DNA of 64,000 nt from Blastocladiella emersonii ATCC 22665. Taxonomy: Eukaryota; Fungi; Blastocladiomycota. The position numbers and the translations under genes were made by a program. Shown here piece after piece: positions 49,503 through 54,872 of this stretch. The DNA lies in assembly GCA_025594325.1 (NCBI GenBank), contig JANHCV010000010.1:62001-126000 (forward strand), in the 5' to 3' direction. The notes under the pieces were generated by a model. It had not been told where the DNA came from. It saw only the letters and a program-made list of their open reading frames with translations, and did no database searches. Position 1 is the stretch's first letter. Each line of letters begins with the position of its first letter.

Positions 49503-50957
49503 ATGAAGCCAATGGATCTTGAACTTCCCAAACTACCGGACACGGTCGTCGATCATGTGTTGTGCTTTGCCGTTCGGACGCACGACCCCGATGACTTTGA
49601 CACAATGCGGCAGTACAGTCACGTTTTGCCTCGCGACCGCGCTCCGTGCATCCACCGCGCGATCCAGCAGCACGCCACGTCCATCTCCATGGACGAGGCC
49701 AGCGCGACGGGGCGCCTCAACGTCCTTGACGCCTGGCGCCGGTCCGGTCGGCCGCTCGAGTACTCGACCCGCGCGATCACGGATGCGGCGAGCACTTACG
49801 AGACGCTTGATTGGTGGCGCCAGTCCGGCCTTCCGTTGCCCAAGTGCGAGGTCAGGTACAAGGTCCAGGTGCACTTTAACGGCGTGTGCACCGAGGGTCG
49901 ATACCAGCAATTTGTACGTTTTCGCTGCAGCTGGCGCGATGGTTTTCTGACCGCGAGACTGCTTCAAACTTAGGATTCGAACGCGGGGCGAAGCCGCCTG
50001 GCGACGCCTATCTCCTTTCGCTTCTCCCCGACGTGCGTGACGGAACAATGGACTCAGTTTGCTGCACCGCTATGCGCATCACCGAGCTCGGCGCGTCGGC
50101 ACTCACGGACGCCATGGTCGCACCAGGTGCCAACGTTACTTCTCTTGATTTACGGTGCTGCGACCTCACGTTTGCCACGCTGCGGGCGCTTCGCCTGCCC
50201 GACTCGGTCACCGAACTCGAGCTGATGAATAACTGGATCGGCGTGGGTGCCTCCAGCGCGATCGACGGTCCTTTGCCGTTTCCTTCTCGGCTCGAACTTC
50301 TCTGTCTCAAAGGGAACAGCCTTGGCAGTTTGTTGGACGCGACAGCCTTGTTTGGTTTCGTGCCGCCAACGCTCCTCACGCTCCGGCTCATCGACGTCCC
50401 AATCTCCAATCTCGCTTGACTTGACTCGTGCGCTTGCCCAAAACTTCCCGCCCGTGCTCGAACAACTGGCGCTTGTTCGCTGCTGGTTCGGCACGGAAAG
50501 TTTGGCCACCCTTGCTCCGCAATTTGCAGCATGCCTCAAAAGCCTGATGATCCAGAGCAACGATATCACGACGGACGGAGCAGTCCTTCTCGCCGACCAT
50601 CTGCCGCCGCATCTCGAAGAGCTTGCCCTCAGTTGCAACCCAATTTTTGATCAAGGTCTTGTTGCGCTGTCGGACCGCCTGCCGCCCACACTGCTCACGC
50701 TGTGGCTGCACGACATCGAGGCGACCGACTCGGGCATCATGTACCTGATGGAGCGCATTCCGCCAAAGCTCGAGAGCCTGAGTTTGGGCGGTGCAACTCT
50801 GAGCCGTGCGGGACTCGAGTCCATGTTCGCAAACATTCCGTCGAGCTTGACGTGGCCCTCCCTTGCAGATGCAGCAGATCCCGAGACGCGCCTTCTACCC
50901 GACGTGTCCGAGTTCCTTCCCAACGTGCATGACGGCCTTCAAGTGGACATGGATTGA
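49503..50957 (+). pseudogene. F-box-like + ankyrin-like + RNI-type LRR gene with two frameshifts
   Basis: LPKLPDTVVDHVL; MDEASATGRLNVLDAWRRSG and LDWWRQSGL repeats; LRRs (VTSLDLRCCDL, LEELALSCNPI, LESLSLGGATL) spread over three frame segments with shifts at about 49896 and 50410; lower GC than neighbours. Confidence 0.72.
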
Positions 50958-51675: not shown

Positions 51676-51681
51676 TATAAA
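51676..51681 (+). promoter_or_regulatory. TATA box candidate for the UbiA-family gene
   Basis: TATAAA about 90 nt upstream of ATG 51768. Confidence 0.45.
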
Positions 51682-51767: not shown

Positions 51768-53363
51768 ATGTCGCTCGCACCCTCATCCAGCTATGATCCG
51801 ACCGACCCGTTCGACGACGCGAGCACCAACACGGGTCTGCGCGGCCGCATGTTCATGCGCCGCCGGTCGACGCTGACGGCCGACAAGCTGGTCCAGTTCA
51901 CGCGGACCAAGACCGCGGCCGGGCGCCGGCGTAGCAGCAGCGCCAGCAACGCGGCCGCCATGGCCGCCGCGGCGGCAGCGGCCGCTGCCGCGTGGGGTCC
52001 GGCGACGTCGGCCCGCGGCCTCGTGCAGCGCGCGCAGTGGCTCGTGCGCGTCCTGTGGCTCTTCACCAAGACGGACATCCACAACCTCGTCCTGCCCGGC
52101 TGCACCATGAACCTCGTCGTCCACTCGCTGTACCCGGTCGCGTCGGCGGCAACCGTGGCGGCGAGCGTGGCCAAGTCGTTCCTGTGGGGCTACCTCGGGC
52201 TGCTCGTCATCGACGTGACGAACCAGCTCATGGGCCAGGCCGAGGACCGCATGAACAAGCCGTTCCGGCCCATTGTCGCCGGCCACATTTCAGTGTCCGC
52301 GGCCATGCGCCTCGCCGTCCTCAGCACCATGGCCTTCATCACCGTCGCGCACTTCCTCGGCGTCCCGCTGTGCGCGCTCTCGTTCGCCGCGGCCACGGCC
52401 ACGTACAACTTTACGGGCGCGGACCGCCACTGGCTCGGCAAGAACCTGTGCAACGCGTGGGGCTACGGGTGCTTCTTCGCCGCCGGCGCGTGGATCGCGG
52501 TCGCCGACGTCGCCGCCGTCGCTGGAACGACCGTCCCGGCGACTACCGGGTACGGCGTGGTCCCCGCGCTGGTCGCGCTGCACGCCGCCACGATCCTCGC
52601 CACCATCACGATCCAGGACCTGCGCGACGTCGACGGCGACCTGCACAGCCGCCGGACGACGCAAAACCTCGCGTGGGGCGAGTGGCGCTCTCGCGTCGTG
52701 ATCGCCGCCGGCATGTTCATCGCGACGGCCGTCGGTGCGACGCGCGTGTGGCCGACGCTCGGGACCGCGGCGCTCCAGCTCGTCAGTGCCTCGACCGTCG
52801 ACCCGATCCTCGCCGCGGCCGCGGCGCCCGTTGTGTGGACCCCGCTCCGCTCGGCATACTACGTCGTGCTCTCGGCGCTCGTCGCCGTCGTCGGGTACCG
52901 CATCCTGCGCGACACGCCGTCGTACGACGTGGTCGCGGACCCCGACGCGCTCGACGTGTACGCCGTGGTCGCCGACGACGACCCGCTCATGGTGTCGCAG
53001 TGGACGGACCTCGAGGCCGCGGCCAAGCGGCTCGGGATCACGGACGCGCCGCCGGCGACGCCGTCAGTGGCCGTGAACGAGGCCAAGCCGGCCGCGGACC
53101 CGCTCAACGACTCGGGCGTCGGGTCGTACGACATCACGTCGCCGAGGACGTCGTATGACGCGTCGTCGCTCGCTGCGCTGTCCGACATCCCGAGCTCGAC
53201 GGGCGAGAGCAACGAGGGGCTCAACATGGAGAACGCGGCGCTCGAGGCGATCCGCGGCCCGCTCGTGCGCAAGCTCAAGCGCGCCCAGTACGAGCGCGAC
53301 GATGTGTCGTTCAAGCTCTACATTGCGTGGCTGTACCTGTACATTTTCACGGCCGTGCTGTAG
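51768..53363 (+). CDS. UbiA-superfamily membrane prenyltransferase / terpene cyclase-like protein
   Basis: Motif I NQLMGQAEDRMNKPFRPIVAG, motif II IQDLRDVDGD, HWLGKNLCN, multiple TM helices; intronless. Confidence 0.9.
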   Translation: MSLAPSSSYDPTDPFDDASTNTGLRGRMFMRRRSTLTADKLVQFTRTKTAAGRRRSSSASNAAAMAAAAAAAAAAWGPATSARGLVQRAQWLVRVLWLFTKTDIHNLVLPGCTMNLVVHSLYPVASAATVAASVAKSFLWGYLGLLVIDVTNQLMGQAEDRMNKPFRPIVAGHISVSAAMRLAVLSTMAFITVAHFLGVPLCALSFAAATATYNFTGADRHWLGKNLCNAWGYGCFFAAGAWIAVADVAAVAGTTVPATTGYGVVPALVALHAATILATITIQDLRDVDGDLHSRRTTQNLAWGEWRSRVVIAAGMFIATAVGATRVWPTLGTAALQLVSASTVDPILAAAAAPVVWTPLRSAYYVVLSALVAVVGYRILRDTPSYDVVADPDALDVYAVVADDDPLMVSQWTDLEAAAKRLGITDAPPATPSVAVNEAKPAADPLNDSGVGSYDITSPRTSYDASSLAALSDIPSSTGESNEGLNMENAALEAIRGPLVRKLKRAQYERDDVSFKLYIAWLYLYIFTAVL

Positions 53364-53466: not shown

Positions 53467-54872
53467 TTACCAGTCCTCGAGCAACCCGTTCTCGGCCATC
53501 TCGCGAAGCGCGGCCTCCGACTCGGCCGCTACCGCCTCAATGGCGGGGTCGAGCGGCTCCGACTTGACCTTGACGCTCGTCGCGGGAGAGGCGCTGGGCG
53601 GCTCCGACTTCACCTTGACGGCGCTGCCGCTCGGTGGCTCGGACTTGACCTTGGGCGACGTTATCGTAGCGGCGAGCGGTTCGGACTTGACCTTGGGAGC
53701 CGCGCCAGCAGAAGCAGACTCGCCGCCGTCCTCGCCGTTGCGGTCCTCGTCGTCGCTGATGGGCTCGTCCTCGATCGACAGGCGGCTCCAGTCGATGGGG
53801 TCGCGGTCGTGGGCCTCGAGGTACGTGTTGGCCTGGGAGAAGGGCTTGCTGCCGAAGAAGCCGCGGTGCGCGGCGAGCGGACTCGGGTGCGGCGCCTGCA
53901 GGACGCAGTGCTTGGACTTGTTGATCTTGGCGCCCTTGACCTGCGCGGGCTTGCCTAAAGACGAGGAGGGTCGTAAAGGGTGAGTGAGCGGTCGGCGGGA
54001 ATGACGCGCATCCGGAACAACGTACCCCACAGGATGAAGACCACGTTTTCGGCCTCTTCGTTGACCTTGGCGACCACGGCGTCGGTGAAGGTCTCCCAGC
54101 CCTTCTTGGCGTGCGAGTTGGCGTTGGCCTGGCGCACCGTGAGCACCGAGTTGAGCATCAGCACGCCCTGGCGCGCCCAGCCCATGAGGTAGCCGTGGTT
54201 GGGCCGCGGCACGCCGACGTCGGCCTCGAGCTCCTTGTAGATGTTGACGAGCGACGGCGGTGGCGGGACGCCCGGGCGCACCGAGAAGCACAGGCCGTGG
54301 GCCTGGTTCGGCCCGTGGTACGGGTCCTGGCCGAGGATCACGGCGCGGATCTTGCCGAACGGGATGCGCGCCCAGCTGTACACGTCGTCGGGCGGCGGGA
54401 ACACGCGCTGCCCGCTGGCCAGCTCGGCGTCGAGGAACTCCTTGAGCTTCTTGAAGTAGGGCTTCTCGAACTCGGGCGCGAGCCGCCAGTACCACGACGG
54501 GTGCATGTTGGCGCGCTCGAGCGCCAGGTACGCGGGCCCGTCCTCGGGGTTCGACGACGGGTACACTTTGGTGCGCTTGGCGGGCGGGCCGCTGCTGCTC
54601 GAGGAGCTGGACCCGACGCCGGCCGAGGCGGCGGACCGCTTGAGCGCGGGTTTGGCGGTGGTGCCCGCGGGTGGCGCGGATGCCGCCTCGGGCTTGACCG
54701 AGGATGGCCCGGCCGACGCAGCTGCTGCCGCCGCGGCCTGGGCGGCATCGTCGCCACCGTCCGCGTCCGGGTTGGCCCGCTTGAGCCACTCGCTCATGAG
54801 CTTGGGCGGGTCCGGATGCTTCTTCTTGTCCTTCATGTTCGGGTTGGCCGACTTGAGCCAGGCGTTCATCAT
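53467..54872 (-). CDS. UNG1: Uracil-DNA glycosylase (family 1)
   Basis: [44 protein letters not shown]; intron 53955-54025; the true N-terminus may extend further upstream. Confidence 0.97.

Follow-up and report, generated by a model that had tools for sequence, protein, structure and literature searches.

We analysed a stretch of 64,000 nucleotides from Blastocladiella emersonii ATCC 22665 (contig JANHCV010000010.1, positions 62,001 to 126,000), hereafter called the window, which carries a single-exon gene for a UbiA-type protein (P0001). Its sequence assigns this protein solidly to the cyclase-type class of the UbiA superfamily. We consider it likely, with a probability of about 0.6, that the protein is a Mg2+-dependent, ionisation-type polyprenyl-diphosphate cyclase and that it represents a blastoclad-wide, stand-alone, intronless orthologue under strong constraint. 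The parts of the gene on which the argument draws are as follows.

51768..53363, + strand: single-exon coding sequence of the 531-amino-acid UbiA-type protein (P0001), with an ATG start and including the stop codon.
51768..52037, + strand: N-terminal extension, residues 1-90, disordered (1-65) and not alignable among orthologues.
52221..52271, + strand: motif I, NQLMGQAEDRMNKPFRP, residues 152-168, the cyclase-type form that stands in place of NDxxDxxxD, with D160 as the retained Asp.
52404..52445, + strand: Y213-N214 and HWLGKN, residues 213-226, a conserved aromatic/Asn position and the K/R-N of the central cavity helices.
52614..52661, + strand: motif II, QDLRDVDGDLHSRRTT, residues 283-298, the metal/diphosphate-binding motif QDxxDxxGDxxxxRxT.
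52908..53276, + strand: blastoclad-specific insertion, residues 381-503, between the penultimate and last transmembrane helices.
53277..53360, + strand: KRAQYERDD and the last transmembrane helix, residues 504-531, to which the helix that ends the bacterial and Dikarya relatives is homologous.

In the UbiA-type terpene synthases Fma-TC, EriG and Tps1A/2A, motif I has the form Nxxx(G/A)xxxD, which replaces NDxxDxxxD, and motif II has the form QDxxDxxxD; in Tps1A, residues D100, D215, D218, D222 and Y155 are essential (PMC9835599). The window protein has both forms, with motif I reading N152-QLM-G156-QAE-D160 and motif II reading Q283-D284-LR-D287-VDG-D291. Regular-expression searches of the translation recovered the whole motif set that an earlier note on this DNA had listed, namely NQLMGQAEDRMNKPFRP at residues 152-168, HWLGKN at residues 221-226 and QDLRDVDGD at residues 283-291, and found no ND..D...D anywhere in the 531 amino acids. 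HW.GKN as a whole is typical of blastoclads. In a profile alignment to the prenyltransferase DGGGPS, N-D-IF-D-IEI-D corresponds to N-Q-LM-G-QAE-D, and motif I has therefore lost two of its three aspartates.

The protein matches the Pfam UbiA family (PF01040) over residues 135-341 with 53.9 bits, against a cutoff of 34.2. Equivalog models of prokaryotic prenyltransferases, in contrast, scored only 13-35 bits against cutoffs of 180-494. The best NCBIfam match reached 34.8 bits against a cutoff of 269, and the NCBIfam matches were weak and of archaeal or plant type. DGGGPS was matched in the PDB with an E-value of 0.11 when the single sequence was used and of 3.7e-4 (22.8 bits) when the clade profile was used. 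Word-indexed searches with the whole protein, with the clade profile and with the core (residues 95-385) all returned the same 11 blastoclad proteins only, and gave no link to Fma-TC. An exhaustive profile search retrieved 1158 cluster representatives at E ≤ 1e-3 and 604 at E ≤ 1e-10; at E ≤ 1e-30 there were only seven, all of them blastoclad. Beyond the blastoclad proteins the score fell from 259 to 116 bits, and the next relatives lay at 82-116 bits. Among the best 155 matches of this search, ND..D...D occurred in none, QD..D...D in 146 and NKPxRP in 122. The named nearest relatives outside the blastoclads are Fma-TC-like proteins of Dikarya and UbiA-like proteins of Streptomyces, the best being a Streptomyces protein (P0013; 116 bits, 33% identity). 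BLASTP identities, over approximately 210-270 residues, were 33-35% to Streptomyces and 28-33% to Dikarya members; among the latter, a Colletotrichum protein that bears the name fumagillin bergamotene synthase reached 31%.

These searches bear on the reading of the protein as an orthologue of Coq2, Cox10 or UBIAD1, the prenyltransferases of ubiquinone, haem O and menaquinone-4 synthesis. All that speaks for it is a shared Pfam family and the name '4-hydroxybenzoate polyprenyltransferase' that JGI assigned automatically to P0005, a metagenomic relative. However, NDxxDxxxD is absent, the equivalog scores are low, the neighbours in the exhaustive search are all cyclase-type, and no model or structure of these enzymes appeared among the matches beyond UBIAD1 (8djk), at a Foldseek E-value of 0.24. 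We therefore reject this reading as extremely improbable. The claim of the earlier note that the protein is distinct from Coq2 and Cox10 thus stands, and clustering with Coq2, UBIAD1 or DGGGPS, which would have contradicted that note, was not seen, the best exhaustive-search matches all lacking the prenyltransferase motif.

To place the protein among its relatives, three trees were built: FastTree on 142 rows, a quick IQ-TREE run on 66 rows and a careful IQ-TREE run (LG+C20 PMSF) on the same number. Two fused Sorochytrium gene models, the truncated AMAG_14079 and ten fragments shorter than 250 amino acids were left out, and the 66-row trees used a random subsample from which three long-branch rows had been dropped. 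All trees are unrooted and were built without an outgroup. Each of them gives three groups, and in the careful tree the supports are 100/99 for the blastoclad clade, 100/99 for the Dikarya split and 100/98 for the bacterial split. The blastoclad clade comprises the window protein, proteins of three Allomyces species, Catenaria, Blastocladiella britannica, Sorochytrium and Coelomomyces, and one metagenomic protein; conservation across six blastoclad genera is strong. The named members of the bacterial group (group A) are Streptomyces 'UbiA family prenyltransferases', the others being metagenomic. All named members of the third group (group B) are Dikarya, from Colletotrichum, Mycena, Panaeolus, Schizophyllum, Camillea, Talaromyces, Diaporthe and Moniliophthora, and its Colletotrichum proteins carry the annotation 'Fumagillin beta-trans-bergamotene synthase'. 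As far as sequence comparison can tell, the blastoclad clade is nested in neither the bacterial nor the Dikarya group, the unrooted tree leaving either as a possible sister, and it constitutes a third deep lineage of the UbiA-type cyclase class. The earlier note had put the protein inside the Fma-TC subgroup. The motif class it named is the right one; the placement is not, as the protein falls in a separate clade with splits supported at 100/98-99 and has 28-35% identity to either outside group.

In the trees, a single protein from outside the blastoclads, P0078 (281 amino acids, JGI metagenome), branches next to their clade, and its branch is long. It has no insertion, and its last helix (FQLYILW) resembles the blastoclad FKLYILW. 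In the Sorochytrium gene models P0009 and P0010, the UbiA-type protein is joined to a DEAD-box helicase (dbp4). At a third Sorochytrium locus (L003 10001-15027) the UbiA-type gene and dbp4 are separate, with a thioredoxin gene between them on the opposite strand. The two fusions, at paralogous or homeologous loci, are therefore probably cases in which annotation merged separate genes.

Residue by residue, the three groups have in common N152, Q153, E159, D160, N163, K164, P165, R167 and P168 in motif I, and Y/H213, N214, K/R225, N226 and R309 outside it. In motif II, Q283, D284, D287, G290, D291, R296 and T298 are near-invariant in all groups, and the QDxxDxxxD pattern is kept in 9/9 rows of the blastoclads, 41/41 of group A and at least 87/91 of group B. 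That blastoclads keep the complete class-invariant residue set argues, at the level of sequence, for a working active site. The catalytic Tyr of the class is Y155 in Tps1A (PMC9835599), with Y139 as its AfUbiA counterpart. In our alignment, which does not contain Tps1A, Y213 is invariant in blastoclads, and its column is Tyr in 83 of 91 Dikarya rows and Tyr or His in bacteria; Y213 lies 53 residues from the motif I Asp, a spacing in keeping with the 55 of Tps1A, again a protein outside the alignment. Blastoclads resemble bacteria at G156, R286, W222 and K225, and Dikarya at Y213, N229 and Y233. F166, G224, W231 and N300 are blastoclad-specific states; position 300 is Pro in 39/41 group A and 82/91 group B rows.

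An AlphaFold2 model, built on nine blastoclad sequences, contains about nine membrane helices. Its core (residues ~90-390 and 500-531) is confidently modelled, with a predicted local distance difference test (pLDDT) score mostly of 70-94, while residues 1-65 (pLDDT <50) and 431-492 are disordered. Foldseek searches against solved structures matched AfUbiA (4tq4), DGGGPS (6m31) and ApUbiA (4od5) with E-values of 1.6e-5 to 1e-3 and TM-scores by target of 0.5-0.65. The best structural match in ESM-Atlas was a Basidiomycota UbiA cluster (TM-score by target 0.88, root-mean-square deviation 2.2 Å, 281 residues, covering query residues 78-531). Neither sequence nor Foldseek searches found a UbiA-type cyclase in the PDB, and a literature search found no published cryo-electron microscopy structure of one.

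These comparisons define how the window protein relates to known enzymes. With the canonical prenyltransferases AfUbiA, ApUbiA and DGGGPS it shares the fold, and NKPxRP and both metal-binding loops can be aligned. These enzymes differ in having the full motif I Asp set; similarity to them is marginal (22.8 bits), and no aromatic or glycerol-phosphate acceptor is implied for the window protein. With the sesquiterpene cyclases of Dikarya (Fma-TC, the beta-trans-bergamotene synthase of Aspergillus fumigatus, and Tps1A/Tps2A of Antrodia cinnamomea) it has in common the membrane-embedded UbiA fold, motif I NQxx[G/S/A]xxEDxxNKPxRP, motif II QDxxDxxGDxxxxRxT, the K/R-Asn position, the last helix and, judged by the Dikarya rows of our alignment, probably the Tyr-Asn position. 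Unlike them, it carries an insertion of 123 residues and an N-terminal extension of 90, and it differs from Dikarya at positions 166 (Phe, not Trp) and 300 (Asn, not Pro). Many group A proteins (Streptomyces and metagenomic) share with it G156, R286, W222, K225 and the NKPFRP variant. Group A proteins, too, are encoded without introns, but they lack the insertion. EriG, the cyatha-3,12-diene synthase of Hericium, belongs to the same class and has the same motifs by its published description (PMC9835599), on which this comparison relies.

The insertion between the penultimate and last transmembrane helices sets the blastoclad proteins apart. After Arg378-x-Leu380, groups A and B have approximately 5 residues where blastoclads have 35-123, the insertion of the window protein being the longest. 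In the AlphaFold2 model the insertion forms a small beta-hairpin and a helix, both modelled with moderate confidence, and the linker after them is acidic and disordered. It contains islands conserved within the clade, RDxPxY, VSxW, AAxRLGI and, in most orthologues, LNDSG, and the last helix that follows retains residues common to all groups (D511, S/T514, F/Y515 and W521). From sequence, we regard the acidic insertion before the last transmembrane helix as a character of the blastoclad clade. Residues 326-358 are variable, and they are deleted in the Blastocladiella britannica protein, which suggests that they form a loop rather than a transmembrane helix. There would then be two transmembrane helices between motif II and the insertion and, by parity, the insertion would lie on the same side of the membrane as both metal-binding loops. 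In this model the insertion is thus probably on the active-site side. The version of the LNDSG island in the window protein reads DSGVGS (residues 455-462, window 53130-53153) and resembles a DSGxxS phosphodegron.

The N-terminal extension contains RRRS (residues 32-35), RRRSSS (54-59) and a poly-Ala tract (63-76), and from Met28 on (residues 28-90) it is rich in Arg, Ser and Ala. The earlier note saw no mitochondrial presequence; judged by this composition, the segment may still direct the protein to an organelle. The Sorochytrium protein P0004 has no such extension. The basic RRxS sites of the extension resemble consensus sequences of kinases.

The single-exon gene model is well supported. 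The core and the C-terminal segment KRxQYERDDxSFKLYIxWLYLY align in the same frame in nine blastoclad proteins, with a variable stretch between them. In Allomyces macrogynus, Catenaria anguillulae, Sorochytrium milnesiophthora and Coelomomyces lativittatus, the orthologous gene spans exactly 3x(aa+1) nucleotides, and the orthologues are therefore intronless; for the majority of their neighbour genes the span exceeds the coding length, which implies introns. The description of the window gene as intronless in the earlier note is thus borne out by in-frame conservation of both core and C-terminal helix and by the orthologue spans. We considered a hidden intron behind the acidic stretch of residues 381-503 and rejected it, as the stretch is in frame, carries conserved islands and is present in all orthologues at varying length. 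A paralogue within the window was also rejected, since a tblastn search of the window matched only the gene itself. The third-position GC content of the 531-codon open reading frame is 0.945. The putative TATA box that had been noticed before was found again 92 nucleotides before the ATG. The corresponding features are listed below.

51676..51681, + strand: candidate TATA box, TATAAA, 92 nucleotides 5' of the ATG, located by regular expression and sequence reading; its function is presumed.
Intronless loci in five blastoclad genomes: window 51768-53363; L001 10001-11320; L002 10001-11494; L003 10001-11197; L007 10001-11236.

Within approximately 10 kb of the gene, the larger open reading frames gave Pfam matches only to WD40, leucine-rich repeat (LRR) and uracil-DNA glycosylase (UDG) families. 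Two of these genes, which are unrelated to terpenoid metabolism, flank it.

50247-50957, + strand: LRR protein.
53955-54872, - strand: uracil-DNA glycosylase (Pfam UDG).

No Pfam match to a cytochrome P450, an oxidoreductase or a transferase was found within approximately 10 kb in the window, Allomyces, Catenaria, Sorochytrium or Coelomomyces, and these five genomes showed no conserved neighbours or synteny around the gene. Two further observations of the earlier note, that no tailoring genes are adjacent and that the gene stands alone, therefore hold at this locus. In Dikarya, by contrast, mining has recovered UbiA-type cyclases as the core genes of clusters, usually with a P450 next to them (10.1101/247940), and EriG is encoded in the erinacine cluster, whereas the blastoclad gene is unclustered and present as one orthologue phylum-wide.

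Of five group A loci inspected in bacteria, three are isoprenoid operons and two are not. In these operons the UbiA-like gene follows a polyprenyl diphosphate synthase gene, with MEP-pathway genes, P450s or a class I terpene synthase close by, a context that speaks for the cyclase reading. The Streptomyces locus of the best non-blastoclad relative (L004 1-11586) is a compact terpenoid cluster with the order DXS, IspG, polyprenyl synthase, IspH, FAD-dependent oxidase, UbiA-like gene, class I terpene synthase and P450. A second operon contains IspH, DXS, IspG, polyprenyl synthase, the UbiA-like gene and a GHMP kinase, and a third locus contains a polyprenyl synthase, a LytB-UbiA fusion, a P450 and a short-chain dehydrogenase (SDR). 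The LytB(IspH)-UbiA fusion is a bacterial metagenomic protein of 431 amino acids (P0073, L010 1863-3158).

Because the blastoclad genes are intronless and the best outside match comes from Streptomyces, an ancient transfer of a bacterial UbiA-type cyclase gene into the blastoclad ancestor can be envisaged. The sequences would be compatible with such a transfer, or with a retrogene origin.

If the protein is a cyclase, D160 together with D284, D287 and D291 would bind Mg2+ and the substrate diphosphate on the cytosolic face, with the basic residues K164, R167, K225, R296 and R309 assisting diphosphate binding. Ionisation would release the allylic carbocation into a hydrophobic intramembrane cavity lined by Y213, N214, W222, W231 and other residues, where it would cyclise and be quenched without an aromatic acceptor. 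Farnesyl diphosphate (FPP) is the likelier substrate; geranylgeranyl diphosphate (GGPP) is also possible. Chain length cannot be read from the phylogeny, as Dikarya enzymes make both sesqui- and diterpenes, the characterised bacterial enzymes make diterpenes, and the blastoclad clade is about equidistant from both groups. EriG shows that the class handles GGPP too. The characterised bacterial diterpene cyclases of this type are the Streptomyces enzymes StlTC, a lydicene synthase, and a UbiA-type ent-atiserene synthase of platencin biosynthesis (PMC10301674); by description they are of the same class as the window protein, and they may belong to group A.

Several points weigh against the cyclase assignment. 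Fma-TC, EriG, Tps1A and StlTC are absent from our trees, in which group identities rest on annotation names and published motifs, and the clade is just 28-35% identical to either neighbouring group. Position 300, which is Pro in 121 of the 132 rows outside the clade, is Asn here, and position 166 is Phe instead of the Trp of Dikarya. The lack of P450 or tailoring neighbours and the phylum-wide conservation are unlike typical fungal UbiA-type cyclase clusters (10.1101/247940). Finally, the enzyme may carry out a non-cyclising prenyl transfer to another acceptor.

This last point can be put more specifically: the protein would be a true prenyltransferase with a non-canonical acceptor (a lipid, a quinone-like compound or another membrane substrate) and would perform a conserved housekeeping step peculiar to blastoclads. 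A stand-alone, phylum-wide, constrained and unclustered gene is more like one of primary or developmental metabolism, the surrounding groups are mostly uncharacterised, and N300, F166, G224, W231 and the insertion could reflect another substrate. However, two of the three motif I aspartates are lost, as in cyclases, the prenyltransferase motif is found in 0/155 of the nearest relatives, and the equivalog models remain at 13-35 bits against cutoffs of 180-494. We thus regard a non-canonical prenyltransferase as improbable and retain the polyprenyl-diphosphate cyclase as our preferred reading.

For a cyclase of this kind, occurrence as a phylum-wide, unclustered single orthologue points to a shared physiological terpenoid, which could be an ancestral signalling molecule or equally something else. 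A narrower proposal is that the enzyme makes the sirenin-type (sesquicarene/carane) skeleton or a related terpenoid attractant of gametes or zoospores. The accepted route to sesquicarene runs through the bisabolyl cation, from which, by general terpene chemistry, beta-trans-bergamotene and (S,Z)-alpha-bisabolene also derive, and this would make the proposal chemically reasonable. The latter two are the products of characterised sesquiterpene members of the class (PMC9835599). The cyclase-type catalytic residue set is present, three Allomyces species have orthologues, and blastoclads have very few secondary-metabolite gene families and hence few candidates (PMC11433233). In the literature searched, whose coverage was incomplete, no sirenin biosynthetic gene is named, and a 2018 preprint described the sirenin biosynthetic pathway as unknown.

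Other observations count against the sirenin proposal. To our knowledge, sirenin is documented only for Allomyces, whereas Catenaria, Coelomomyces, Sorochytrium, Blastocladiella and the window organism conserve the orthologue just as well. No P450 lies nearby for the two hydroxylations. The candidates mentioned in the Allomyces transcriptome paper are other 'terpene synthase' homologues, and the Allomyces orthologues AMAG_13030 and AMAG_14079 were not found mentioned in the literature searched. Nor do public data of this organism offer an RNA run, as the sequencing runs that contain this stretch are three DNA data sets from one sample. We therefore hold the sirenin proposal to be rather unlikely. 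Its extension, in which the blastoclad enzyme is a sirenin-skeleton or general attractant cyclase whose insertion, on the active-site face and with its conserved LNDSG and RDxPxY islands, and whose RRxS-rich N-terminus would couple its activity to developmental signalling, is likewise speculative and would be doubtful on present grounds.

The literature consulted reports UbiA-type cyclases only from ascomycetes, basidiomycetes and actinomycetes (PMC9835599, 10.1101/247940, PMC10301674). The terpene synthase surveys PMC6592883 and PMC7466969 do not cover Blastocladiomycota, a phylum with no NPAtlas entries and only six predicted gene-cluster families (PMC11433233). No publication on the blastoclad clade was found in the literature searched, the coverage of which was incomplete. 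What appears to be new here is a phylum-wide blastoclad lineage that has the motifs of a known catalytic class but carries an extra loop domain and is organised differently in the genome.

An unclustered single orthologue maintained across a zoosporic phylum suggests that the product is a terpenoid with a physiological role, for instance as a hormone, a pheromone or a component of membranes, and not an accessory metabolite. Hardly any secondary metabolism is recognised in blastoclads, but sirenin, a classical fungal sex pheromone, is made by them, and the orthologue group makes a short candidate list for sirenin biosynthesis, consisting of one intronless gene. The clade-specific insertion, predicted to lie beside the active-site loops, would give a handle on how an intramembrane cyclase might be regulated.

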